Origin: Chara braunii | Lineage: Eukaryota; Plantae; Charophyceae | Direction: 5' to 3' | Length of the DNA stretch: 64,000 bases | NCBI GenBank assembly: GCA_003427395.1 | Contig: BFEA01000019.1 | Location: 337,026 to 401,025 of the forward strand | Shown: positions 3,261 through 50,950 of the stretch, in pieces | How positions within the stretch are numbered: the stretch's first letter is position 1 | How the letters are laid out: every line of letters begins with the position of its first letter | Made by a program: the position numbers and the translations under genes | Notes under the pieces: generated by a model | Told to the model about the DNA's origin: nothing | The model's input: the letters and a program-made list of their open reading frames with translations, nothing else | The model's database searches: none

Positions 3261-5006
3261 AGTTTGCAAGGGTCCTGACTGACCACGTCTTGCCAGAGTG
3301 TATCACAATGGATGCAATGTCACCATTCACACAGATTATGACTCAACACACACAACGCAGAATGGGGATGAGATGAGAACCAAGTCGCGCAGCTTATATT
3401 ATCTCGAATACATAATATAAAGAGTATCTCAAGTTCATGAATCCAAGCGCTCAACAATCATGATATGTCCCTCTCTCGAACATCAGCACAATGGGGCCTG
3501 GCTGAGCCAGCGCCAACCTCTCAGCAACTTGTCAAGCGCAAAACAGGTAAGTAGTTACCATAGCCAACTCGTCAACCTCTCTTACTTCTCTCTCTCCTTC
3601 CTCAAGATCTCAGTCTCGGTCCTCTTCTCTCATCATGCATGCTCACTACTACTTCGAGAATCTGCTCTGAATGCTACTCACTGTAGACTAACAGCTAACC
3701 CTATAACTATGCTACTTGGCTGGTGCAGCTATGGCTGCCTCTTGCAAGCCAGCGCCCAGCTCCTTCTTCCTTCCAGCGCAGCTTCACCTCCAGCGCTAAC
3801 CCAGCTAGCCAGCGCACAAGTGCACGCAGCACTTCCACGCTGATAATGCCAGTGGGGATCTGATGTCAAGGGAGGCTGGCCTATTGTTTTATACTGCTGG
3901 CCTCCCCTGGCGAGGTCTGCATTGGTCTGTATTNNNNNNNNNNNNNNNNNNNNNNNNNNNNNNNNNNNNNNNNNNNNNNNNNNNNNNNNNNNNNNNNNNN
4001 NNNNNNNNNNNNNNNNNNNNNNNNNNNNNNNNNNNNNNNNNNNNNNNNNNNNNNNNNNNNNNNNNNNNNNNNNNNNNNNNNNNNNNNNNNNNNNNNNNNN
4101 NNNNNNNNNNNNNNNNNNNNNNNNNNNNNNNNNNNNNNNNNNNNNNNNNNNNNNNNNNNNNNNNNNNNNNNNNNNNNNNNNNNNNNNNTCAGGGGCACAA
4201 CTGTGACCTTTGACATTGGCTTTTGTTTAGTTAGGATGTGACTCTTGACCCAGAGAACATGTCCTTTGATCTGCTTTCACGAGCTGGGCCCTGGCGGGTG
4301 ACCCCTCTATGCTGCATTTGCCGAACAGGGTCTGAATTGGGTAAAGGCCCTTTTACCAGCAATCACTCACAATCATTATGACGTATTCGGTAAATGCTCG
4401 CTTATAAAACAACAGAACAGTCAATCTGGTGCACTCATACCCACAGCAGCCTGACCCATGGGCTCCCCCCCCGCCCCCCCTCCTCCCTCTCCGCCCCACC
4501 ATCCTCCACTGCACCTCATTCTTCGGCCTCGCCACCCTCACCCCTGGCAGCATCAACCGAACCCAGCCATCCTGCTCCCCACCCTGACCGCAGTCGGCGA
4601 AAAAGCGACGGCCGGGTGTAGTACCTGCAAATAAGACTAATAGATGTCAATGGGATGGCTGCAGGCTGCAGCTCACCTTTGAAAGAAAGCACGCAATTAT
4701 CTGGGAATTAGTCCGAATTACTATGTTACGAAGGCGCCAAGCCACTGAGTCTCTCCCAGGTGATGTCTGCACGCAAGAGGCACACCGTACACACTCTCTT
4801 CCTCACAAGGCAGAAGAAAAATTTCAGCACGTGCAGCTCCTGGACGAATAGATTGGAGCCAATTGGCCGCCGGCAGGACCTTTTTTTTTGTTTTTTTTAA
4901 TAATCTCGGCCCCATCAAAAACACCTGAGACGAGTGAAATCCTTTCAGTTTTCACAAACAGCATTCATTCATTTACCTGTTTTCACACACAGCTTTCAAT
5001 TCAACT

Positions 5007-6783: not shown

Positions 6784-6949
6784 GGGCCAGATCCCACTGG
6801 CAAAGAGGATTGGAATGAGTGTCTGAATCTGGACGTGTTTGTGGCGAGGTGCAGAAAACTGTGATTGATCTGCTTTTCTGCATCTCTGGGTGGCACACGT
6901 CCAGATTCAGACACTTATTCCAATCGTCCTTGCTAGTGGGATCTGACCC
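6784..6949. mobile_element. Tourist/PIF-Harbinger-type hairpin MITE
   Basis: Long imperfect TIRs GGGCCAGATCCCACTGGCAA..., TAA TSD on both sides. Confidence 0.9.
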
Positions 6950-7399
6950 TAAGTTGTAACAAGTTACAAACAACCTGTATTTTTTTAATATCTAAAAAAT
7001 ATATATATATTAATTTTTATTATTATTAATTTTCTTTTAATGAACTTGTATCAGGATCTCAAGATGAAGTATGGAGTTCTGTGGATTAGAACTAGCTTAA
7101 TATGCAAAAAGCAGCAGTTGAGCCAGATTCGGAGTTGGACGAAGTGGGAGGCGGCGCCCGAGCGCTCTAGTCCCGCGACGCGTGCGCTACAGTGTTAGGT
7201 TTTCGATCAACGCGGAGTTCGCTCGCCACGCCCCGGAGCGCTCAGCACGGGGACGGCGTGTCGCATAGCTGTCGAGCTTCTGTGTGAGCTCGAACAATAG
7301 CGGCGTGGACTTGTCCAAGGAGAGGGGAGGGCAGGTGGGTTGTATCGGGCGGAGGTCTCACCATTGCGCAAAGAAGTTTGAACTTACGAACCGAAGAAC

Positions 7400-18952: not shown

Positions 18953-20637
18953 ATGTTTTTCTTTTTCTGCAGCACTGTGTGTGAGCTTTGAAGCTCTCGT
19001 TTGCGATCATCTTGATCATAGTTGCCGATCTCCGAGCTTCTGCTGCGAATGCATCGAGTTTGCTGCCACCTGATCCAATTTTGCAAATTGGAAAAGCCAA
19101 GACTACACACAAGAATGGACAACACGATCGACGGGGAGTTGAAGTCGTTTCATCGGTTCGTCAAGCTGAGCTGAGAGAGGATCGCCGACTGGAGTTGGCT
19201 GAAGTACATGACAAACTGTCCGGTGATGACAACGGTGAAGGGAGGATGGTAGACTCCGGCCATGCCGCATCCCATCTGCTCAGAGAGGGTACGGAGCGCA
19301 GAGTTCTAAGGACTCATACAAGTTATCTCAGACGCACACGCCCTCTCCGAACTCTGGCTTGGATAAGTTGGATTGACCCACCAAACTCAAACTCATCTGC
19401 TCAGGGGATGAACAAGCTTGCTGTCGGTGTTATGCAGGCAATCAACAGTAAGACGAATTTCAGTGCGAATGGCAGTGCAAATGGAAGTACAAATGTGGTG
19501 TTTTCTCCCCTTAGTGTGTTTACAGTGCTAGCTATGTTGAGTGGGGGTGCGGAGGGCAACACTCTGTCTCAGCTTTTGACAGCACTGAATGCATCCGATG
19601 TTTATCAGCTGAGTGATGGCGTGGGACGCATGCTGTTGCGGGCTGCCGATGATAGCACTGCAAGCCAAGGTGAAGGGGGCCAGAGAACAATGCTGTGTGA
19701 GTTAGCGAACAATCTGTGGGTTCAGAATAGGTTCCCTCTCACGGACCGCTTCGTCAACCTTACAAATTCAACGTACCATGCGGTTCCGCAGGTCGTCGAC
19801 TTTTCTGTCGATGCAGACGCCATTCGTCAGACAATCAATGCTTGGGTTTCAAAAGTCACACATGGTAAGATTTTAGACCTTCTCCCTGTTGGTTCCTTGG
19901 GTAGCGTGACACGAGTGGTACTTGCAAATGCTCTCTATTTTAAAGCTGTGTGGGCTGACAAGTTCAACCAATCATTGATGGAGCCCGGCCCGTTCATGCT
20001 ATCCAGTCAAACTTCGGTTGATGTCCCAATGATGAAGATGAAGGATCTGCAAGGGTCTGTGCACAGCATGTGAAACAAAGAGGGATCGGCAGGGAACTTC
20101 TCTGTGCTGCGGCTACCATATAGAGTGGGGATGGAGAATGAAGGGGTGGGTACGTCGGGGTGGGCGATGTATATATTCCTCCCAGAGAGAGTCGATGGCC
20201 TCGCTGACCTCGTTGCGGAGCTCACTCCTGAGCAGTTGAGCACGTGTCTTTCAATTAGCTCGAGCATAGACAGTGAGGTTTGGATCTCCGAGCTTAGGAT
20301 GCCCCGATTCCGTCTGACGTCAGACACGCTGCTTCTAAGTGATGCCCTTAAGTCAATGGGGATTGTGGATGCATTTGACCCATTGTCTGCAAACTTTACA
20401 GCCATGGCGAACGCCGCTGAATCACCCTACGTGTTAGAAGTATACCACAAAGCTTACGTGGAAGTCAACGAGGAAGGCTCAGAGGCAGCGGCTGCAACGG
20501 CTGTTGGGCTCTTAGGCGCCGGACCTCCTCCCCATACCTTTGTCTCGTTCATCGCCGATCATCCATTTTTGTTCATCATTCAAGACCCTTTAGGAAACAT
20601 CATCATTTTGGGACAGGTCCAGAACCCAACCCTGTAG
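18953..20637 (+). pseudogene. Serpin pseudogene, paralogue of 35779-37443
   Basis: NVVFSPLS, LANALYFKAVW, EVNEEGSEAAAAT and DHPFLF motifs; ATG 18953 out of frame; TGA at 18982 (Trp in paralogue) and at 20071 (Cys in paralogue). Confidence 0.9.
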
Positions 20638-32034: not shown

Positions 32035-33861
32035 GAAAATGCACAGCAAATACATCGAGGATATGCGAGTGTCTATAACATTTCTGGGAGACATCAGACC
32101 AGAACAGGCAATGGAAAACTTGATCGAATGCCTTCCTTTAGACTGGAGGAAAGTGTTGAGAAAAGGACCATCGCTACAAGAGTCTGACTGGGTCGCAATT
32201 AGGGGACGTCAGGGAGAGGTAGGTAATGTGGTGAGCTGTGACCCAAACGGACTAGTGGCGGTGGACATATTTACAATCGGCAACGACAACTCCCTCCAAA
32301 GACCAAGCCCAGAGCAAATACAACTTCTCGACAAGAACGACCTCTCGAGAATAAGAGTGTTGAGGCTGGAGGACAGATGGGTGGCATTCTCACCGGACAT
32401 ACCGATATCCCATCTGCCCCTGGACCCTGGGGAATGGGAATGGACCAGCACAACTGCCAGAGGCANACCCTGCACTAGAACGCTGCATAACTTGACAGTC
32501 AAAGCCACATACAGATTACTCCGTCCAAAAATTAACCTAAGGGACCAGGTGGAAGAGAGATGGATGAAACAACTGAATATTGCTAAAGAATCGTTGAGGG
32601 GCGTGAAATGGTTCCAGCTAACCAAGAAGAAACCGGCGAACTTGGCATCCTTGCAATGGCAGATGGAACACCGTTGCCTACCAACCAACAACTGGTTGAT
32701 AGACAGAACCACCTTGGAACAGAGGGGACTGGCACTCCCCTGGTGCAGAATATTCTCCAACGCATTTCCATTTAGAAAGATACCGGAGACAATGGAACAC
32801 ATATTCCTACAATGCCCAGGAGCGGTCTGGCTTTGGCGCTGGTGGGACAGAGTATGGGACCAGTTAGGAACAGGGGTACCTTGGCCATGGGACTGGAAAG
32901 CCCTGCTGTTCGAAAGATGGCCTCTTGAGCAGCAGGATGATTTCACACTCAATATCTTTCAACAAGGAAGAAGGGCAATAATGCGGGCACTGTGGAGACG
33001 TCGCTGCACGTTTGAAATGGAAGGAATGAGGTTGGAGGGGCCAGAATTCACAGAGAGTATACAACAACAGATCCATACAAACATAATGGGGAAATGGGAA
33101 GAAACCAAAAAACAGATCAATCATATTCACACTGGGAAAGAGATAAAACAGAGGATACAAGACTTCTGCAGAAACTGGCTCGGGGGGGAAATGGGNGGGA
33201 GGATAGGACGGGTGGAATGNAATGGAGGAAGTAGGGGACAAGGGGAAAGGGGNGACAACGTGACAATCACAAAAGACTACAAACTCCTTTTCAANGACTG
33301 GACCAAGCTGGATGNCTCAACCCCAATGAGGCCGAGCAGCGACTTCCCGGATTTCTTTCCCCCCTCTGCAAACAGTTTAGTAGGAATTTCTTGGTATGGG
33401 GGAGAGTGATTGTGGGGGGAGGCACCAGGAGGGCCTCCAAGGTTTCGGATTTACCAGGGAGTTGCTGTACTTTGGGTTAAGTAGGAATCTCCGGGTATGA
33501 GGAAGAGTGGTTCTTCAAATTTTCTGATGCTGTGTTTAACCATGTCCGGAAGTGAAGGGAGGGACTAGCACGTAGAAGCAGATATCTGGCACCAATTTTA
33601 GGTGAAGAGGCTCCTCCCTCATAGCAATAGCCTGTTCAGTCAATCCCCTGGGTTCCAGGGTAATCAATNCTGACAGGACCCCACACATGCGCTATCTCTG
33701 ATCCTTTTCAAACTCAGCTTGTATATGGGACGCTNGACCCNTTTTCCAGCAGGTGTTGCTCCCCACCAATAGATGGAGCCTCTCCCCAGGTGCTAGTGGT
33801 GACTGCCCTTAACAGCACCGCTAGCACTGGTGGGGGCGTGTGTTGAAAAAAAAAAAAAAAA
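32035..33861 (+). mobile_element. 5'-truncated L1/Tx1-like LINE (ORF2 C-terminus with zf-RVT, structured 3' UTR, poly(A))
   Basis: ORF 32039-33409 with WQMEHRCLPT...ETMEHIFLQC; poly(A) 33846-33861. Confidence 0.9.
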
Positions 33862-33989
33862 GAGATTCTGCCTCTTCAGCCTGCACTCCTCTACTCGGCC
33901 GCTGGCTTTGTCCCACCTATGCTAGCAGGTTCCCCCAAATAAGCATCACACCAATCATAACCGAGAAAACACATTGAAGCCTGTACCTG

Positions 33990-34330
33990 CCCGCATTCCA
34001 CCCACAAATTCCCCCAAGCAGCTCCATCATATGAAGAACCTCTGAAACCTGTCACTCCCCCCCATACCACTGCGCCTCCACCATGGCCGGGGGCGGAGGT
34101 GGGAAGAGCTCAGGGAACTTGGAGAGGGGGTGGAGTGGGCTGGAGGGATGTATCCTTGTCCAAATTGAATCATGAAACAAGAGGTGATAGTCCCTCTCTC
34201 CTTCCTCCAGGTCCTCTGAATTCCCCCTCCCCTCTCCCTTCCATTCCACATTTGCAATCCAGCCCCCTTGTTTCCTCCCCCAGCCAGTCTTTGCTTATTC
34301 CTCACTGGGCGTTAGACTCTAGGTTTGGTA
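33990..34330 (-). mobile_element. LINE ORF2 C-terminal remnant
   Basis: Translation ends FPELFPPPPP...WYGGE*, like the WYGGE* end of the 32039 ORF. Confidence 0.6.
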
Positions 34331-34482
34331 GATCTCGGCTGTTCCCTCTACCGGGTAGATCTCGGCCGCTCCTTCCTAGTATACTTACACATATTGGTTG
34401 GTAGTGTGAGGTATACTTGAGTGGAGAATATAGCTTATTTAAAAAGGAAAAAAAAGTGAGATGAGAAAGACGACGACAAGGG

Positions 34483-34592
34483 CTACCTTCTTCCCCCGAA
34501 TACAACGTACCCTAATTATAGCTGTGTATCTACGGTATCTTTCAGTCTAAATACAGCTATAATGAGCGTTCATTATACTTGGGGGAAGAAGT
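34483..34592. repeat. ~110-bp imperfect hairpin (MITE or pre-miRNA-like)
   Basis: cttcttcccccgaa...attatagctgt / acagctataat...ttgggggaagaag. Confidence 0.6.
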
Positions 34593-35499
34593 TCAAGAAG
34601 GTAGGACCAGGGTTATCCTGGTTACTACAGTCATTTTCTGGTGGTCCACAAGGTTGGATAAAAAGGGATTTTAAATTACCACTTCGGTTATTTTCAGGCA
34701 TTGCTTCTTCCTAGAGGAACAACCAGGATAGCGGAGAGTACTGGTCTTCAAGTATGGCTTCACTTTACAGTCAATCCTTCCGCTGCAAGTGTAGAAAAAA
34801 AAAAAAAAAGCTGTCTGGGCTCTCCAGGCAGTAACGTGGGAGGCATCATGAGTGGACTTCAATATATTATTCTGACTTACCTTCTGCTTCATCGAAGCTG
34901 TTCTTCGACTTTTGTGGTTCGGAGGGGCCGGCGGAGAAATAAACTTAAACCACCAGTTTGCAGTTCGGAGGGCGGGAAAATAAACTTAAACCACCAGTAC
35001 TTGGCCCAGTTATCCGCCGCGGAAAAAAATAGAGTAGAAACATTTGTAGTCGGATGCATTTGGGCGCTCCTGTAGTGACCAGTACGTTTCCTAAAGGCCC
35101 AACTTCAGGAAGTACTGGTGGTTTAAGCCCAACCCCTATCCGAGTCTATGATAAGTGTAGGAGCCTTTGTGAACCTAGAAGTTGGTGGATTTTTTTTTTT
35201 TTTTTTAAGAAGTCGGTGGAATAGTAACTGGACTGCTGAATCGTGATGATCCCGAGAATGGATATGGAGCTGATCCCTTGGGGACCTGTTTTCATTAAAA
35301 AGAAAGAAAAGACAAAAGAATGTGGCCATCACTCACGTATACTGCAGTGAGTCCTCTCCTTGCTCTCATACCAAAAAGATATTAAGTCATAATGCCACCT
35401 GGGCCCGAGCTATACATTTCCTCTCTAGCATGAGCCCACTTCCAATGCGAGCTAATCTGTGTGGCCATGTGCGGCCGATCTCCTAGCCAATGCTGCAGA

Positions 35500-35735
35500 A
35501 ATCCCATCTTGAACGAGGTACAGGAATGGATGACCCGCAATGAGTTTAAAGAGATGGTACCGTTCCAACCAAGCATACCAGTGGCCACAACTGGTGCAAC
35601 AGTGGAAGTCGCTTCCACGTATTAAGCTTTGTGGTACAACAGCGACGCAAACAGGTATTCGGTGGTGGTGGTGGGATTCCACGATGGGCATAACGTTTAT
35701 CGCGATTGGGTCAAGCGCGTCCACAATCCAGATCG
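35500..35735 (-). pseudogene. Degenerate tandem duplicate of the serpin C-terminal/RCL segment
   Basis: IVDALDPIAIN...YHKA/YVEA...KLIAGHPFLYLVQD across frameshifts. Confidence 0.75.
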
Positions 35736-35778
35736 GCACATTCCCAATAAGCTCAAACGCCCACTTCGCCAAGCCTTT

Positions 35779-37443
35779 CTACAGGCTTGGGTTCTGAACC
35801 TGTCCCATGATGATGATGTTTCCTAAAGGGTCTTGAATGATGAACAAAAATGGATGATCAACAATGAATGAAACAGAGATGACCGGAGGACCTGCGGCTA
35901 AGGTGCTCACAATTATACTCGTTGCAGCTGCTGCCTCTGACCCCTCCTCGTTGACTTCCACGTAAGCTTTGTGGTATACTTCTGACACAAATAGTGATTC
36001 CGTGGAATTCGTCATCGCTGCAAAGTTTGCAGACAATGGGTCAAATGCATCCACAATCCCCATTGACTTAAAGGTATCACTTAGAAGCAAAGCATCTGAC
36101 GTCAGACGGAATCGTGGCATCCTCAGCTCGGAAATCCAGACCTCACTGTCTAGGCTTGAGCTAATTGAAAGACACGTGCTCAACTGCTCAGGAGTGAGCT
36201 CCGCTACGAGGTCAGCGAGGCCATCGACTCTCTCCGGGAGGAATATATACATGTCCCACCCTGACATACCCACTCCTTGAAGTTCGTTCTCCGTCCCCAC
36301 TCTATATGGTAGCCGCAGCACAGAGAAGGTCCCTGCCGATCCCTCTTTGTTGCACATGCTGTGCACCGACCCATGCAGGTCCTTCATCTTCATCATTGGG
36401 ACATCAACCGAAGTTTGACTGGATAGCATGAACGGCCCGGGCTCCGTCAATGATTGGTTGAACTTGTCGGCCCACACAGCTTTAAAATAGAGAGCATTTG
36501 CAAGTACCACTCGTGTCAAGCTACTCAAGGAACCAACAGGGAGAAGGTCTAAAATCTTACCATGTGTGACGTTTGAAACCCAAGCATTGATCGTCTGACG
36601 AATGGCCTCTGCATCGACAGAGAAGTCGACGACCTGCGGAACCGCATGGTACGTTGAATTTGTAAGGTTGACGAAGCGGTCAGTGAGAGGGAATCTGTTC
36701 TGAACCCACAGATTGTTCGCTAACTCAAACAGCATTGTTCTCTGGCCCCCTTTACCTTGGCTTGCATTGCTATCATTGGCAGCCTGCAACAGCATGCGTC
36801 CCACAGCATCACTCAGCTGATAAACATCGGATGCATTCAATGCTGTCAAAAGCTGCGACAGTGTGTTGCCGTCCACACCCCCGCTCAACATAGCTAGCAC
36901 TGTAAACACGCTAAGAGGAGAAAACACCACATTTGTACTTCCATTTGCACTGAAATTTGTTTTACTGTTGATAGCCTGCACCATACTGACCGCAAGCTTC
37001 GTCATCCCCCGAGCAGTAAGTGTTGAGCTTGAGTTTGGAGGGTCAAGCGAAGCCAAGGTTCGGAGAGGACGAGTGGGTCTGCGATAACTTGCGTGTGTTC
37101 TTAGTTCTCTGTGCTTCGTACCCTCTCTGAACAGATGGGATGCAGCATGCCCGGAGTCTACCATCCGTCCTTCACCGTTGTCATCACTGGACAGTTTGTC
37201 ATATACTTCAGCCAACTCCATTCGGCGACCCTCTCTCAACTCAGGCCGATGAACCCATGAAACCACTCCTTGTCGATCATGATGTCCATTCTCGTGTGTG
37301 GTCACATCTTTTCCAACTTGCAAAATTCGATCAGGTGGCAGGAAAAGTGATGCATTTGCTTCAGAAGCTTTGAGATTGGCAACCACAAGAATTATCACAA
37401 ACAAGAGCTTGAAGGCCCACACACAGTGCAGCAGAAGACCCAT
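35779..37443 (-). CDS. Secreted-type serpin, 554 aa, intronless, predicted inhibitory (P1-P1' approx. Leu-Ala)
   Basis: Hydrophobic N-terminus; NVVFSPLS, LANALYFKAVW, hinge EEGSEAAAAT, DHPFLFIIQD...GQVQNP; unbroken ORF. Confidence 0.92.
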   Translation of the reverse strand: MGLLLHCVWAFKLLFVIILVVANLKASEANASLFLPPDRILQVGKDVTTHENGHHDRQGVVSWVHRPELREGRRMELAEVYDKLSSDDNGEGRMVDSGHAASHLFREGTKHRELRTHASYRRPTRPLRTLASLDPPNSSSTLTARGMTKLAVSMVQAINSKTNFSANGSTNVVFSPLSVFTVLAMLSGGVDGNTLSQLLTALNASDVYQLSDAVGRMLLQAANDSNASQGKGGQRTMLFELANNLWVQNRFPLTDRFVNLTNSTYHAVPQVVDFSVDAEAIRQTINAWVSNVTHGKILDLLPVGSLSSLTRVVLANALYFKAVWADKFNQSLTEPGPFMLSSQTSVDVPMMKMKDLHGSVHSMCNKEGSAGTFSVLRLPYRVGTENELQGVGMSGWDMYIFLPERVDGLADLVAELTPEQLSTCLSISSSLDSEVWISELRMPRFRLTSDALLLSDTFKSMGIVDAFDPLSANFAAMTNSTESLFVSEVYHKAYVEVNEEGSEAAAATSIIVSTLAAGPPVISVSFIVDHPFLFIIQDPLGNIIIMGQVQNPSL

Positions 37444-37526
37444 ACAATGTGTCAGGCCGCAGAATCAATGAAACATTAACCAAGGCAGCCAAGAATGTCA
37501 ACCACAAATATATATATATATATATA

Positions 37527-38462
37527 TGAAACTCCGACGAAACAGTTTGTCACAGCCCCTTGTTTGTTGTCCTCTTCTCTCTCTCTGCCTACGGTTTACC
37601 GAACAGTTCTGTTTGTGACGATATATATATATTGTCACAAAGTTATCACTTCGTTTTTTTATCTTCTTGCTTACAATTCCCCCTGTTCAGAAGCTCTTGC
37701 GTACGAGGCCGCCCAAGTGGATGTAGGTAGAGCGGCGGCTGCCCCCAACCCCGTGTGTCATATCGACCCACTTGCACACATCCAAAGGGCAAAGAGGCAA
37801 AGAAAAGAGGAAGGAAACAGCTGAACACAACAAAACAGGGGGAAACAAATCCTAGATGACAAGTCCCACATGCAAGCACCGCCCCCACGTCACAGGCCAA
37901 ACGACGGGACAAGACCAACCAGGATATCAAAACACTTTGCCTGCAAAAACAGAAATCAATCTATTGCAACTACCGCCCCCTGTGCTGCCCGGTAAACCAT
38001 AGGCAGAGAGGGAGGGAGAAGAGGACAACGAACGAGGGGCTGTGGCAAACTGTTTCGTCGGAGTTTCACCGACTCATCAGGAGGCTGAACCCTATCCATC
38101 TGGTGTGGGTGAGTGATAGTCTACTTTGGTTTTGGTTAAGGTAGATTATCATTTACAGTGTACTCAGTGAGGGGATTCTGCAGACTGTTGAGGGTTCAGC
38201 CTCCTGATGAGTCGGTGAAACTCCGACGAAACAGTTTGTCACAGCCCCTCGTTTGTTGTCGTCTTCTCTCTCTCTGCCTACGGTTTACCGGGCAGTTCTG
38301 TTTGTGACGATATATATATATCCACGTGGGCGGCCTTGTACGCAAGAGGTTCTGAACAGGGGGAGTTGTAAGGAAGAAGATTAAAAACGAATTTAAGATT
38401 TTTTTGTTTTTTTTGGTTTTTTCGCTTAGGCGCTCTGATATCATGTGACAATATATATATAT
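37527..38462 (+). mobile_element. Retrozyme-like non-autonomous element cluster with hammerhead-bearing direct repeats
   Basis: Direct repeats 37527-37631 and 38216-38321 (689 nt apart); antisense copy 37985-38093; iMet-like PBS on - at 38432-38443. Confidence 0.7.
38169..38250 (+). ncRNA. Type III hammerhead ribozyme
   Basis: cagactGTT / stem I gagg-gttcag-cctc / CTGATGA / stem II gtcgg-tgaaact-ccgac / GAAAC agtttg (stem III); predicted cut after 38189. Confidence 0.9.
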
Positions 38463-39366
38463 NNNNNNNNNNNNNNNNNNNNNNNNNNNNNNNNNNNNNN
38501 NNNNNNNNNNNNNNNNNNNNNNNNNNNNNNNNNNNNNNNNNNNNNNNNNNNNNNNNNNNNNNNNNNNNNNNNNNNNNNNNNNNNNNNNNNNNNNNNNNNN
38601 NNNNNNNNNNNNNNNNNNNNNNNNNNNNNNNNNNNNNNNNNNNNNNNNNNNNNNNNNNNNNNNNNNNNNNNNNNNNNNNNNNNNNNNNNNNNNNNNNAAA
38701 AAAAAAAAAAAGTTTCCAAAAATTCTGAAAAAAAACTATGTCATGCAGAAGAATAAACTAAACAACATTTGCCTCAACAGTACATCCAAATGTCTTACCA
38801 AATTTGAAATAAAAATCAAATACGAAAAATAAATAATATTAATGAAAATAAGAAAAAATAAAACGAGAACGAAATTATTTGCGTGGGCGAGCAAGTTTTT
38901 GACACCGCCATCTTTGGCGATTGTTCATCTTTTTTTGGCTTTGTCAAATGCCATGAAATTTTATACATATGTATCTTACATCATAGAGAACCTAGAAATA
39001 AAGTTTGAAAAAATAATATTTTTTTTCAGGCCCCGAAATAAAGGGAAAACAAAAAGTGAAAAGAGAAAAAAAAAAATTAGTAAGTGGGAAAGCAAGTTTT
39101 GACACCACCATNTTTGCCGATTTTTCATTATTGTTTGGCTGCACAGAATGACTTCAAAATTGAGAGACAGGTAGCTTACATAACAGAGAACTCACAAAAA
39201 ACAAATCAGAAAAAAATAATAATTTTTAGGTACCAAAATAATTTCTTGCGGGGTCCGAACCCCTTCGAGTTCGGGCCCCGTACGGGGACCCGAACGCCCG
39301 AACGTTCGGGGGTCAGCTTAGGGGCCTCCGCACGTTCGGCCTGGCAACTCTATTTGACGATATATA

Positions 39367-39505
39367 GTCACAAACCCCTCGTTTGTTGTCCTCTTCTCTC
39401 TCTCTGCCTACGGTTTACCGGGCAGTTCTGTTTGTGACGATATATATATCTGTTTGTGACTATATATATATATATATATTTGACGATATATATATATATA
39501 TATAT
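39367..39505 (+). repeat. Further truncated copies of the hammerhead-element repeat end, separated by (TA)n
   Basis: cccctcgtttgttgtcc...cagttctgtttgtgacg(at)n, then shorter tgtttgtgac(ta)n and ttgacg(at)n. Confidence 0.8.
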
Positions 39506-39809
39506 GACCAATTGGCAAGCCCACAAAGATAGATCAGAAACATGGATGCAGAGTAGAAGCCAGTGTAGCATGATGAGGAAGCAGTCAAAAGGAAGAAGAA
39601 GGAAGAGAAAGCAAGTTACTGAAAGCCAGGGTAAATAGGCAAGGAGAGAAACTTCAAATTGGAAAAGTTGGAAAACTGTAACAGAAGGATGATGAGAAGC
39701 TGGAAAAGGAAAAGCACAGAATAGCAATGAAGTGCTGCTGCAGTGGTTCACTGGTGATTACCCGGCAGACTGCATGAAGATCGCAAACACTCTTAGACTA
39801 CTGTACTCC

Positions 39810-40295
39810 CATGATGATGATGAAGAAGAAGAAGAAGAAGAAGGAGAAGAAGGAGAAGAAGGAGGAGAAGAAGAAGAAGAAGAAGAAGAAGAAGAAGAAG
39901 AAGAAAGAAGAAGAATATTCAGAAGAAGAAGAAGAAGAAGAAGAAGAAGAAGAACAACAACAACAACAACAACAAGAAGTAGGAGAAGAAGAAGAAGCCG
40001 AAGAAGAAAAATGAAGCTCAAGAAGCAGATGACGCCAAAGGAGAAGTAGAATCAGAAGAGGAAGAAAAGGTATCTGAAGTAGAAGAAGAAGTCAAGGAAG
40101 AATACAAAGGCAAAGAAGATGAAGCCGAAGCCAAAGCCGAAGCCGAAGCCAAAGAAGAAGATGAAGATGAAGACAAAGACAAAGACGAAGACGAAGAAGA
40201 AGACAAAGTGGAAGAAGAAAAAGAAGCTGAAGAAGAAGAAGAAGCTGATGAAGGGAAAAAAAAGAAAAATGCTGATGAAGAAGACGAAGAAGTAT
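39810..40295. repeat. (GAA)n-rich low-complexity tract
   Basis: Trinucleotide repeats visible directly. Confidence 0.9.
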
Positions 40296-47561: not shown

Positions 47562-50500
47562 TTTTTTTTTTTTGCACACTCTCCCAACAGTGTTAGTGGT
47601 GCTGGTAAGAGCAGACACCACTAACACCTGTGGGGAGGCTCCATCTATTGGTGGGGAGCATCACCTGCTGGAAAACGGGTCCAGCGTCCCTTACACCGAA
47701 AAGTGAGAATGTTCGAGAACATTGAGAGCAGTGTCCGTGGCCCCTGCCAGCATTGATTCCCTTGCAACCCAGGGGATTGACTGAGCAGGTTTATATAGTG
47801 TTCTATTGCCATCTGTACCTCTTCACCCTTAAAAGAAGGGCGCCAGCTAAAGCAGTGAAGGGCTGGTACTATTTCCAGTCGGTGGCATGAACTAACTGTA
47901 ATTTAATCCTACGTTCCAGAGAACTATCTGGGGAGCCCTCTCTCAAATCAGATCTTTGTGACCTAATCAGATCTGTATTTCAGTGACATGGGATAGATCC
48001 TTAAACCCCTAAACCCCTAAAGCCTTTCCTCTCCCTGGTATCTGATACCCTAGCAGTATCGTTCCCCTTTCTTTGCTTAATTACCTCAATCCCTCCCATA
48101 CCATTCCAAACCCACCAAGCAGTTGGACCGGGGGGGGAAGGGATCGGGGAAATCTTCGCTGGGGTCTCATCGGGATTGCTGTATCGATCTTGGTCCACTC
48201 ATGAAAAAGGAGCCGGTAGTCTCTCGTTAGATTCTTTCGCCCTTGTCCCTCCCCTAGGTTCTTTTGTCTCCCTTGCCATTCCACCTTTCCAATCCTCCCC
48301 GCGTTATCCCCACCAAGCCAGCTAGGCTAAATTCCTTGATTTTTTGTTGGATATCCTTTTGTGAATGTAGTGATTGGATCCGAGCCTTAACCTTCTCCCA
48401 CTTTGCCCTTATTTCTGTTTGGATCTGTTGCTGTATGCTTTTCGTAAATTTTGGTCCTTCCAGTCTTGCTCTTTCCATTTCGTATGTGCAGCGTCGTCGC
48501 CAGAGGGCCCAGAGCACCGCTCGACGTCCCAGTTTGAACATATTGCTAGTGAAATCATTTAGTTGGTCTTTAGGCAAGGTTTTACATAGCGAGGCTTTCC
48601 AGTCCCACGGCCACTGGATCTGAGTTTCTGGTTGATCCCAGATTATGTCCCACCACCTCCACAACCACACCGCGACAGTGCATTGAAGAAATATATGTTC
48701 AATTGTTTCTTGCAATTTTCTGGATGGGAACGCGTTGGTGCAAAGCCTACACCAGGGCAGGGCGTGCCCTCTCTGCTCCAAGTTCGTTCTATCTATTAGC
48801 CAATCATTTGTCGGTAGGCAGCGGTGCTCGATATGCCACTGCAGTGAGGCAAATTTCACTGGTTTTTCCTTGATCGTTCCGAAGCACCTTATGTCTCTTA
48901 GCTTGTCCTTGTCGATGTTTAAGTGGTTCATCCAACGTGTCTCCACCCGGTTGTGAAGGTTTAATTTCGGCCTTAGGAGCCTGTAGGTCGATTTTACTGT
49001 TAGGCCGTATAATGATCTAGTAAGTTTTTTGCCCTTTCCTGCTGGGGTTGTTCATGCCCATTCTATCGGGTCCAGGGCGAGTTGGTGGATCGGAGGTAGG
49101 CGATCTATTGCTTTCTTTCATGAAGCACTCTAATTTTGGACAGATCCTCCTTTTGGCAAATAATTGTTTGTTCTGGAGAGTTTTTTTGAAGGACGTTATT
49201 CCAACTTATTTGGAAGAGGTTCACTCTTATTGATCCGTTGGGCTCACAGTAGACAATGTTGCCCACCTCACTTGGTCGATCCCTCAATGCCACCCAGTCC
49301 AATTCCTGCAGGGTGGGGCCTTTCCTTAGGATTCTCCACCAGGCTAGAAATATTTTTTATTATTATTGTTTCCAAGGCTACCTCTGGTCGATGGTTGTGG
49401 CTTAGTCTCTCTCTTAGCTGGTCCGGGTCAATCCAGTTTCTCTTTCCATATCTCATATGTCTTTTATCCTTGTTATTCCTCGTCTGACCCAGTCTTGCCA
49501 TGGAGAGTCCACGCAATGGAGGGTTTGTCCCTTCGAGTCTGCTACCCATCTATTGCCAGAAAGGGGTTGTCGTGCTACCTCTTCTCATCTCTCTGGTGGA
49601 GTTTTATCTGGTAGGGGCAGACTTCTCCATATTTTTAGAAGGTCAGTCCAGAAGGGGTCATTGCGTAAATCGACCCTTGCTGCTTGTCTGGGTGAGTCTG
49701 GGGGGGGACAGCGATGTTGCGCACCTCCTCTTGGGATGGGCCATCCGCTATTTTCCAGCCACATCAACGGGTCACTCTTCTCAACTGTTTGTGGTGCTAA
49801 GCGGGTAATCTGTTCTAGAACTAACCCCCTCTATGGTGATTCTAGATTGAAAAGTAGACATTTGAGTCATTGGATTGCTAGTGCTTTAGTTTGTATTGAA
49901 GGATCGATAATGCCTAATCCACCTTTCAATTTGGGTTGGATTATAGATTGTCAAGCCACTCAGTTGATCACGTTGCGTTTCTCATGATTTCTTTTCCACA
50001 GGAAGGCAGCTCCCTCACGCTGCAAGGGGCGAAGGGCGTTTTTGTATAATGCCCAGATAACCTGATTTATACCAGAGGGAGGCCAATACCACATTATTAA
50101 GTATTAGGGAATGTCCAATCAGTGAGGTATGTTTGTCCTTCCAGAGTGTCATTTTTTCCAAGGGTGGGCTAGAGATCCATTCATTGTTAGTAGACGACCT
50201 GCCTTCTGCTGACATCAACACCCCAAGTACTCTAATGGGGGGCTCCTTTGGAAGTCATTTGAGCCTAGGTTCTTCTGGGGGTCTCACTCCTTGGTGGTGT
50301 ATCCATCAGCCTCGGGTTTTGTTTCCCCAGTTGACCTTCATGTCAGACATTCTACAGAAACGGTCCATCATGTGTTGGACCTCTGCCATCGATTCATGGG
50401 AAGCTTCGATCATTAAAGTCAAGTCATCAGCAAACAATGAACACACTGGAATTGCCTCCTGGGGTATTGAAGACACTTCGATTTTCTTGATATTCTTATG

Positions 50501-50950
50501 TCTTCTCAGGTTGGCTGTCAGTGCTTCCATAACTATGACGAACAGGTAAGGGGCTATAGGGTCACCTTGTCTGTCCGACCTTTGGTGAGTAATGGGCGGG
50601 GCTAGATTCCCATTCATCATGACTCTAGTTGTCGCGTTCGTGTGTAGGATCTTCACCCAACGTCTGAAGCACGACCCAAAGTTAAGCTTCTCCAGGAATT
50701 TTTCTAGGAACAACCAGTCTACATGGTCATATGCCTTCTCAAAGTCAATGAAAATGATCGCTGCATTGTGTTTAGATTGTCTGGTTAGCTTTGATCATTT
50801 CATTTACCAATGGGATATTGTCCTGGATGTTCCGGCCTTAAATAAACCCAGTTTGGTCGGGGTGTATAATATCGGTCATGAATGGTACCAGGCGGTTAAC
50901 CAGGGCTTTAGCCATTAATTTGTATACAAATGTGAGCAGTGTGACTCAGG
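47562..50950 (-). mobile_element. Degenerate L1/Tx1-like LINE: RT domain, zf-RVT, 3' UTR and poly(A)
   Basis: IDFEKAYDHV, RQGDPIAPYLF, LFADDL (50306-50760); WHIEHRCLPT...ETIEHIFLQC; poly-T 47562-47573 on +. Confidence 0.92.

Follow-up and report, generated by a model that had tools for sequence, protein, structure and literature searches.

An inverted copy of a type III hammerhead ribozyme in Chara braunii is most likely an oppositely oriented fragment of a microsatellite-anchored mobile element

In the nuclear genome of Chara braunii a hammerhead ribozyme is accompanied by an antisense copy of itself that begins almost exactly at the predicted cleavage site. This arrangement raises the question of whether the antisense copy is a built-in regulator of a circular RNA or the trace of some other process. 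The window analyzed here, that is, the whole 64 kb stretch of DNA in which the locus lies, belongs to scaffold BFEA01000019.1 of assembly GCA_003427395.1. We additionally examined 102 kb of extra scaffold sequence, which together with the window gives 166 kb. One part (L005) extends with its positions 1-22891 (22.9 kb) past the right end of the window, and the other (L006, 79 kb) is located on the same scaffold at a distance of about 150 kb. An open reading frame of 554 amino acids at 35779-37443 on the minus strand is 100% identical to the serpin CBR_g20355, and the inverted repeat sits inside an annotated intron of the 41-kb serpin pre-mRNA. Pfam analysis of the 124 ORFs of the window identified Serpin, one decayed LINE-type RVT_1 and zf-RVT. 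The same analysis revealed no GIY-YIG domain, no reverse transcriptase of Penelope-like elements and no transposase near the locus. The LINE reverse transcriptase fragment, used as a query, matched no Chara proteins, a protein word search with a 49-aa ORF overlapping the ribozyme remained blank, and an exact look-up of 10 ORFs in a protein collection gave zero matches. A tRNA-like sequence is absent from the region 36.5-40.5 kb.

The ribozyme occupies positions 38182-38237 of the plus strand, where a complete type III hammerhead aligns with the Rfam model RF00008 (45.8 bits, E 5e-8). This is a near miss of the gathering score of 48.5 bits, caused by helix I and the GUU triplet. At the gathering threshold Rfam reported nothing in the whole window, and the hammerhead emerged only with E-value thresholds. 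Helix III (38180-38188 paired with 38231-39) is open, while helix I, a hairpin at 38190-38203, and helix II (38211-38227) are capped. Together with the CUGAUGA core at 38204-38210 and GAAA at 38228-38231, the G10.1-C11.1 and A15.1-U16.1 pairs and an NUH triplet complete the conserved core, of which all parts are present. Cleavage is predicted between GUU and G (38189/38190, plus strand). GUU is a permitted, uncommon triplet, and the sister copy B1 described below carries GUC. Folding of 38176-38243 gives the hammerhead as the minimum-energy structure (-22.7 kcal/mol, z -2.6), with 9-10 bp in helix III, 4 bp and a 6-nt loop in helix I and 5 bp in helix II, in agreement with the Rfam alignment. 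A type I reading (GAAAC...GUC/A, 38240/38241) was rejected, as no helix I forms beside the core. We regard 38182-38237 as a credible ribozyme, for which self-cleavage is predicted from the sequence. A 29-nt stretch of core and helix II occurs exactly twice in the 64 kb, once per strand (38052-38080 on the minus strand), and shuffled sequences are expected to contain none. The identical 29 nt are found in a marine phage type III hammerhead, which scores 53.6 bits and thus above the gathering score. Exact core scans of metagenome and viral contigs placed this phage ribozyme in intergenic DNA with unrelated flanks, and we rejected it as a relative; the likeness is convergent or a shared helix II, not kinship.

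The preliminary description had noted that 37985-38093 is a near-perfect reverse complement of 38191-38295. Local alignment confirmed this with 101 matches, 4 mismatches and 4 gapped bases, the latter forming one 4-nt gap region. A repeat search recovered the same relationship as two inverted pairs, 38009-38093 with 38191-38275 (85 nt, 94%) and 37985-38014 with 38266-38295. The onset of homology was also placed correctly at 38191, one base past the first base (38190) of the predicted 3' cleavage product: the bases facing 38188-38190 mismatch and the homology ends exactly there. The right, sense arm (38191-38295, plus strand) comprises the part of the ribozyme that begins at +2 of the 3' cleavage product, together with a CT-rich tail, and the left, antisense arm (37985-38093, minus strand) is an inverted copy that likewise begins at +2. 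Without a 5' strand for helix III, the left arm is dead as a ribozyme (26.8 bits in Rfam).

Between the arms lies a spacer (38094-38181, plus strand), for which a hairpin with G-U pairs had been described at 38109-38157. We recovered this hairpin with 21 bp (38109-38129 with 38136-38156) and counted 7 G.U pairs in the whole spacer fold. The fold reaches -31.4 kcal/mol on the plus strand (z -4.3) compared to -10.7 kcal/mol on the minus strand, and this asymmetry of the modelled energies points to a putative RNA-level structure on the ribozyme strand. The spacer has no other match in the 166 kb, and the simplest reading is that it represents the plus copy upstream of the ribozyme. The complementary blocks that had been listed within 37640-37850 are present as well, but, taken as a whole, the region is not more stably folded than shuffled sequence (z -1.3 and -0.1). 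A modelled transcript spanning both arms would strongly favor the inactive hairpin (-243 kcal/mol) over the best fold that retains the ribozyme (-177.5 kcal/mol).

The ribozyme and a tail of about 70 nt form the 3' end of a repeat, here called family A, whose terminus ...TGTGACGA(TA)n is constant and whose 5' ends are variable. In the copy that contains the complete ribozyme the 3' terminal motif TTCTGTTTGTGACGA, followed by (TA)6, is located at 38296-38321 (plus strand). In the whole window the end motif with a TA run was found eight times, in each case within 37.6-39.5 kb, with 0.01 occurrences expected. Seven of the nine TA runs of the window fall in this cluster, and the same combination is also present in L006. 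Two larger copies in direct orientation are truncated at their 5' ends: A1 (37527-37632, plus strand) begins at +27 in ribozyme loop 2, has its own (TA)6 and no cleavage site, and A3 (39367-39438, within the region 39367-39505, plus strand) begins at +49. Tiny copies of the 3' end, each with its own TA run, lie on the plus strand at 39351-39358, 39450-39460 and 39477-39485. The 5' ends within the window are thus -96, +2, +27 and +49, in addition to those of the three copies that are only 8-11 nt long. A constant 3' end combined with variable 5' truncation, that is, a nested set, is the signature of target-primed reverse transcription.

A second component of the cluster, segment X, is found twice. 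The minus-strand copy at 37633-37734 carries the end motif TGTGACA, adjoins a TA run and makes up the outer part of the left arm. In the repeat search it is the inverted twin of 38323-38450 (80 nt, 86%). The plus-strand copy (38323-38462) has a longer tail ending in CATGTGACA(TA)n, lies between two TA runs and enters the gap at 38463-38697. Both copies of X begin at the same base. The left arm accordingly reads from the minus-strand family A copy through 250 nt of unique sequence (37735-37984) into X and its TGTGACA(TA)n end, the 250-nt stretch replacing the 26 nt TTCTGTTTGTGACGA(TA)n of the right arm. This stretch has no other match in the window, L005 or L006, and X is absent from the extra 102 kb.

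The extra sequence contains three more copies of family A, all in L006. A4 (33778-33888), with 99% identity, begins at +9/+10 and is enclosed by TA runs. A5, in inverted orientation, meets A4 tail-to-tail across a shared TA run and begins at +45. A6 (6914-6978) begins near +47. Furthermore, we found a sister family, B, with three copies of the same hammerhead at 85% identity (GUC site, 40 bits). Its tail, of about 50 nt, differs from that of family A and ends in TATGAC(A)A(CG)(CA)n. The 5' ends of family B lie near -200 and at +9 to +16. The former belongs to B1 (L005, about 3976-4283), which carries a complete ribozyme at 4172-4226, while in B2 and B3 the truncation falls within the ribozyme and (CA)n runs stand on both sides. 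The insertion context is (TA)n in either orientation for family A and (CA)n for family B, and about 10 pieces are found per 166 kb. B1 retains the helices via one-sided changes, and in helix III the two families differ only by changes that preserve pairing (C-G to U.G and G.U to G-C). Likewise, both arms in the window are identical over the hammerhead (38191-38237), all four mismatches falling in the tail. The maintained pairing and the identity of the arms over the ribozyme indicate that the ribozyme was constrained in the source elements.

With the copies at hand we can return to the proposal of a retrozyme-like circular RNA of about 689 nt to which the antisense arm would belong as an evolved component, forming a viroid-like rod and blocking re-cleavage of the circle. 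The folding energies given above speak for this idea, as does a circular fold of 37501-38189 that is 70% paired. The ribozyme is of type III, as in plant retrozymes (PMC4918200), and three of the four arm mismatches are T-for-C changes that would still pair as G.U on plus-strand RNA. On the contrary, the proposed monomer length of 689 nt is the spacing of a repeat of only 106 nt (37527-37632 and 38216-38321), of which a third copy follows 1130 nt further on and hence at a different spacing. The upstream copy is truncated inside the ribozyme and has no cleavage site, and therefore the locus cannot release a monomer. The sequence following the second 106-nt copy also differs from that following the first, and the region outside the arms shows the unremarkable folding described above. 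Viroid-like circular RNAs have ribozymes in both polarities or a conserved rod, whereas the minus-strand hammerhead here cannot form helix III. An antisense arm at the same position in other copies, as a conserved off-switch would predict, was absent: around B1, the one further ribozyme that is complete, no inverted partner lies within 1 kb, and the tail-to-tail partner of A4 has another geometry and other breakpoints and leaves the core uncovered. In this small sample the arm is thus unique to one locus, and the breakpoints elsewhere vary. We consider an evolved rod or off-switch very unlikely, and on BFEA01000019.1 this reading is largely refuted. Most likely, the antisense copy is a second mobile-element fragment in opposite orientation and no built-in regulator of a circular RNA.

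The comparison with plant LTR retrozymes (PMC4918200, Cervera, Urbina and de la Pena 2016) leads in the same direction. These elements also occur in green-lineage hosts, carry type III hammerheads and form non-coding units of a few hundred nucleotides, and their range of 600-1000 nt includes the proposed 689 nt. However, they have LTRs of about 350 bp with complete hammerheads and 4-bp target duplications, while the locus has a 106-nt repeat with a single cleavage site, no LTRs, and microsatellite-anchored ends with 5' truncation. The position after the upstream repeat (37640-37653) gave no match to a tRNA-Met primer-binding site. A match of 11 out of 12 to what we take to be this primer-binding site is found at 38433-38444 on the minus strand, which is the wrong place and the wrong orientation. 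No polypurine tract abuts the position of a 3' LTR, and the purine run at 38002-38028 arises as the complementary sequence of the CT-rich tail. The ribozyme type is shared with plant LTR retrozymes; nothing else that we tested is.

We favor, with a probability of roughly 60%, the explanation that fragments of a short, microsatellite-tailed retroposon with a Penelope-like source have accumulated at the locus, the hammerhead and the tail of about 70 nt forming the 3' module of this retroposon. Copies would have been anchored by their 3' ends on (TA)n and truncated variably at their 5' ends through target-primed reverse transcription, by way of an RNA intermediate that we infer. Since (TA)n is its own reverse complement, copies could insert on either strand. 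One minus-strand copy would in this manner have become joined head-to-head to a plus copy that reads through the ribozyme. The observed junction has this form: 37985-38093 on the minus strand abuts 38094-38309 on the plus strand, so that an inverted, 5'-truncated copy stands at the 5' end of the plus copy. Two simpler routes to such a junction were rejected. In snap-back, self-primed cDNA synthesis the right arm should not run upstream of the cut, where it contains a working 9-bp helix III strand, and classical twin priming on one RNA should yield adjacent parts of the template, whereas the arms overlap in content.

Penelope-like elements show much of this architecture. Their insertions are 5'-truncated partial tandems, often with a further 5'-truncated copy beside their 5' end in inverted orientation, and favor (TA)n, (CA)n and (C)n (PMC8557442). 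Two Chlamys subclades with canonical 3' hammerheads and high copy number have been described in C. braunii itself (PMC8557442, Craig et al. 2021), and non-autonomous Chlamys elements exist (PMC8557442). In work with a purified Penelope-like element protein, nicking and extension took place on both DNA strands at AT-rich sites (PMC11167929, Frangieh et al.), and this activity offers a direct route to head-to-head copies, especially on self-complementary (TA)n. Paired hammerheads on opposite strands, 100-700 bp apart, accompany Penelope-like elements (PMC4209133, Cervera and de la Pena). The locus therefore resembles Chlamys elements in its host, in the hammerhead near the 3' end, in the series of 5' truncations, in the insertion into microsatellites, in the inverted 5'-truncated copy at the 5' end and in the high copy density. 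It differs from them in that the window contains no ORF for a telomerase-like reverse transcriptase or a GIY-YIG endonuclease, which makes it at most a truncated or non-autonomous Penelope-like copy, and in that family A targets (TA)n, while (CA)n and (C)n are the targets of Chlamys and (TA)n that of Naiads (PMC8557442). A further difference weakens Penelope-like parentage: published hammerheads of Penelope-like elements are of type I or minimal (PMC4209133), and the one described here is of type III, the type of plant LTR retrozymes. Judged from architecture, the source would most likely be a Chlamys-group Penelope-like element or a non-autonomous derivative of one. Animal non-LTR retrozymes, which are likewise short non-coding hammerhead repeats, are regarded as non-autonomous Penelope-like derivatives related to the terminal repeat (bioRxiv 10.64898/2026.07.22.740005; PMC5680766). 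They form regular tandem arrays with type I ribozymes and small circles, whereas the arrangement at this locus is irregular, truncated and in both orientations. What is new here is a hammerhead-bearing repeat family; the kind of element is already known, including hammerhead elements of the Penelope-like class in Chara.

The inversion could also have arisen without any RNA intermediate. A block consisting of ribozyme tail, TA run, X and a second TA run may have been duplicated in inverted orientation at the DNA level, by template switching or fold-back repair at the palindromic, AT-rich repeats. The 250-nt stretch would be a later addition to the left arm, and the breakpoint would coincide with the cleavage site by chance. 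(TA)n tracts are hot spots for palindrome-mediated rearrangement. Homology between the two arms covers the inner (family A) as well as the outer (X) part, in unchanged order, and the minus-strand family A copy lacks the last 15 nt of the tail with the end motif and the TA tail, which all other family A copies have and which target-primed copies keep. Inverted copies of X that start at the same base, together with the lack of X and of the 250-nt stretch from the extra 102 kb and of any further copy of either in the 166 kb, make this duplication a serious rival. Several findings argue against it. No more than one base separates the inner breakpoint from the cleavage site, and identity is not equal along the arms (95% in A, 89% in X). 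The minus-strand copy is the most divergent of all family A copies, with private differences to all three plus copies (two T>C, one C>T and a 4-nt insertion), and the G at 38261 that is private to its neighbor is absent from it. Opposite orientations with other geometries also occur at another TA cluster, which makes orientation flips a property of the family. On balance we consider a DNA-level duplication unlikely, although clearly less so than the rod. For the retroposon explanation the same data leave a gap, in that the minus copy continues into 250 nt of unique sequence and X, and a long form of the RNA that would have included these parts is unproven.

A miniature DNA transposon is another candidate source of inverted structures next to TA. 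In this case inverted-repeat units targeting TA (GTCACAAAC...GTTTGTGAC) would have captured the hammerhead, and the arms would be nested or adjacent copies. Three copies with 5' ends between +45 and +49 do carry a 9-bp terminal inverted repeat GTCACAAAC...GTTTGTGAC and are flanked by TA; among these, A3 and A6 have nearly the same 5' end. Furthermore, the whole block 37633-38309 opens with TGTCACAAA and closes with TTTGTGACGA between TA runs. Yet one 3' end combined with many 5' ends, some in copies of only 8-11 nt, is unlike cut-and-paste transposition, the sister family ends in (CA)n without such inverted ends, and the search for transposases near the locus was negative. A captured hammerhead thus appears improbable.

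We also considered that the palindrome is an artefact of short-read mis-assembly across TA repeats beside a gap. The assembly is a draft with many N runs, one of which (38463-38697) starts directly to the right of the locus, and tandem and inverted structures of this kind are known to upset short-read assemblies (PMC8557442). However, 33742-38462 is free of N. A chimeric fold-back should produce two arms without differences, whereas those observed are distinguished by 4 base changes and a 4-nt indel and run into different sequence, which makes an assembly error highly unlikely.

The breakpoint at +2 also bears on whether the ribozyme cleaves itself in the living cell. Of the two readings proposed in the preliminary description, the one that sees the arm as inverted cDNA of an RNA cleaved by its own ribozyme agrees with a retroposon origin of the repeat and is the best account of the breakpoint. 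Only one of about ten copies, though, begins at this site, and the statement that either reading implies cleavage in vivo was too strong. All 5' ends taken together lie at about -200 (B1), -96, +2, +9/+10 (two or three copies), +27 and +45 to +49 (three copies). By a rough estimate, a single copy would start within one base of the cleavage site with a chance of about 0.01-0.02. Given about ten copies with one at the site, the chance of at least one match is near 0.2, again roughly estimated. A cDNA running off a cleaved template would begin at +2 and contain a dead ribozyme, as the minus arm does. HDV-like ribozymes of R2, RTE and L1Tc set the RNA 5' end of these retrotransposons by self-cleavage. 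In Chara, as in those elements, the 5' boundary of a genomic copy could record ribozyme cleavage of the template. HDV-like ribozymes, however, cut at their own 5' edge and remain whole in the copy, whereas the type III hammerhead cuts inside itself, and a copy of the cleaved RNA consequently loses one strand of helix III and is dead. In the one in vitro study on a Penelope-like element, insertion did not require cleavage, and RNA ends at the cut site were not seen (PMC11167929). Taken together, it is plausible that the minus copy begins at +2 because its template had cleaved itself, and hence that cleavage occurs in vivo, but we hold this tentatively and at somewhat less than even odds.

What a read-through transcript of the locus would do is a separate matter. 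Silencing of the ribozyme by the arm would be a by-product of the insertion architecture, without design. A more far-reaching possibility is that the transcribed head-to-head hairpin switches off the ribozyme, the only complete one here, and yields small RNAs that silence the family, the minus arm being a retro-copied cleavage product. We regard this combination as quite doubtful. Mu killer of maize is an inverted transposon duplication that acts as a hairpin-RNA silencer. What the locus has in common with it is part of a mobile element repeated head-to-head in inverted orientation, from which transcription would produce a long perfect hairpin. If the idea were true, the 105-bp near-perfect hairpin would constitute a Mu-killer-like locus, for which the 41-kb serpin pre-mRNA is a possible route of transcription, and the minus arm would be a genomic fossil of hammerhead cleavage in vivo in a streptophyte alga.

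For the biology of these elements the Chara families may be useful in several respects. For the question of what role the hammerhead has in Penelope-like elements, a genome-wide tally of copies that begin at the cleavage site would be a cheap read-out of cleavage in vivo. The Chara repeats appear suited to such a tally, with a canonical monomeric type III ribozyme, sharp 3' ends anchored on microsatellites and two sister lineages. A type III hammerhead in an algal repeat that seeks microsatellites and bears the signature of target priming also has a bearing on the relationship between plant and animal retrozymes. Finally, an inverted ribozyme copy beside (TA)n should be read first as insertion architecture.

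Annotation places the serpin gene CBR_g20355 (window 35782-37410 with an upstream exon at ~53.7 kb; L005 10001-51113, L005 being sequence of the same scaffold that reaches past the right end of the window) over a span of 41 kb. Consequently, the whole hammerhead cluster lies inside an annotated intron of this gene, whose orientation is antisense to that of the complete ribozyme. With a further one at 18985-20634 (82% identical), the number of serpin genes in the window is at least two.

On the same scaffold, the hammerhead repeat also has a sister family. The ribozyme of this family is 85% identical and has the cleavage site GUC, while its tail is unlike that of the window family, with (CA)n at the end where the latter has (TA)n. 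Three copies were found in L005, 13-20 kb past the right end of the window. One is complete (L005 3976-4283) and two are 5'-truncated (L005 10180-10274 and 10469-10570). An intergenic type III hammerhead was furthermore recovered from marine viral contigs (53.6 bits; L001 8190-8244, minus strand), with a core match at L002 3461-3489 (plus strand); L003 and L004 are the same contigs as these two. The 29-nt core and helix II of the viral hammerhead are identical to those of the Chara hammerhead. Since the flanks are unrelated, the helix II/loop 2 sequence is common to both without homology of the elements.

Upstream of the complete ribozyme, the spacer contains a hairpin of 21 bp with a 6-nt loop (window 38109-38156, plus strand), predicted to be stable on the ribozyme strand only; the surrounding spacer fold includes seven G.U pairs. 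Neither an Rfam match nor a second copy within 166 kb of window and scaffold sequence was found for this hairpin. Its predicted shape resembles that of a microRNA precursor or of a stem bound by protein. On the minus strand, TGATATCAGAGC (window 38433-38444) stands immediately after TGTCACA and agrees in 11 of 12 bases with what we take to be the primer-binding site for plant tRNA-iMet. We estimate that ~0.01 such matches would be expected by chance in this 2-kb region; both position and orientation are wrong for the primer-binding site of a retrozyme.

Several repeats surround the cluster. A dispersed AT-rich repeat that contains a 200-bp duplication (window 38698-39353) recurs in L006, scaffold sequence ~150 kb away (L006 34111-34523 and 41716-42292). 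In the window as in L006 it adjoins the TA/hammerhead cluster and lies beside a GC-rich stretch of the CCGAACG type. Short ATTGGCAACCACAA-like motifs occur on either outer flank of the TA cluster in the window (37373-37388, 37492-37507 and 39510-39526), and CCAATT adjoins that of L006. The TA microsatellite itself may be part of some larger repeat. Further along the window we found an extended (GAA)n/(GAAGAA)n tract surrounded by purine-rich sequence (39800-40000) and a decayed LINE-type retrotransposon (48257-50794, minus strand; RVT_1 50309-50794, zf-RVT 48257-49051), whose nearest database proteins are only 38% identical.

Finally, the 100 kb of L005/L006 scaffold sequence contain many U6 copies (L006 6670-6764, 9290-9401, 14092-14201, 27764-27873, 64283-64389 and 64431-64535) and some U2 snRNA copies (L006 45165-45339; L005 10760-10873). 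Several of these are truncated or adjoin microsatellites, and one lies 150 nt away from a hammerhead-tail copy. Either these snRNA copies form a multi-copy gene family, or they are retro-copies produced by the machinery of the hammerhead repeat.
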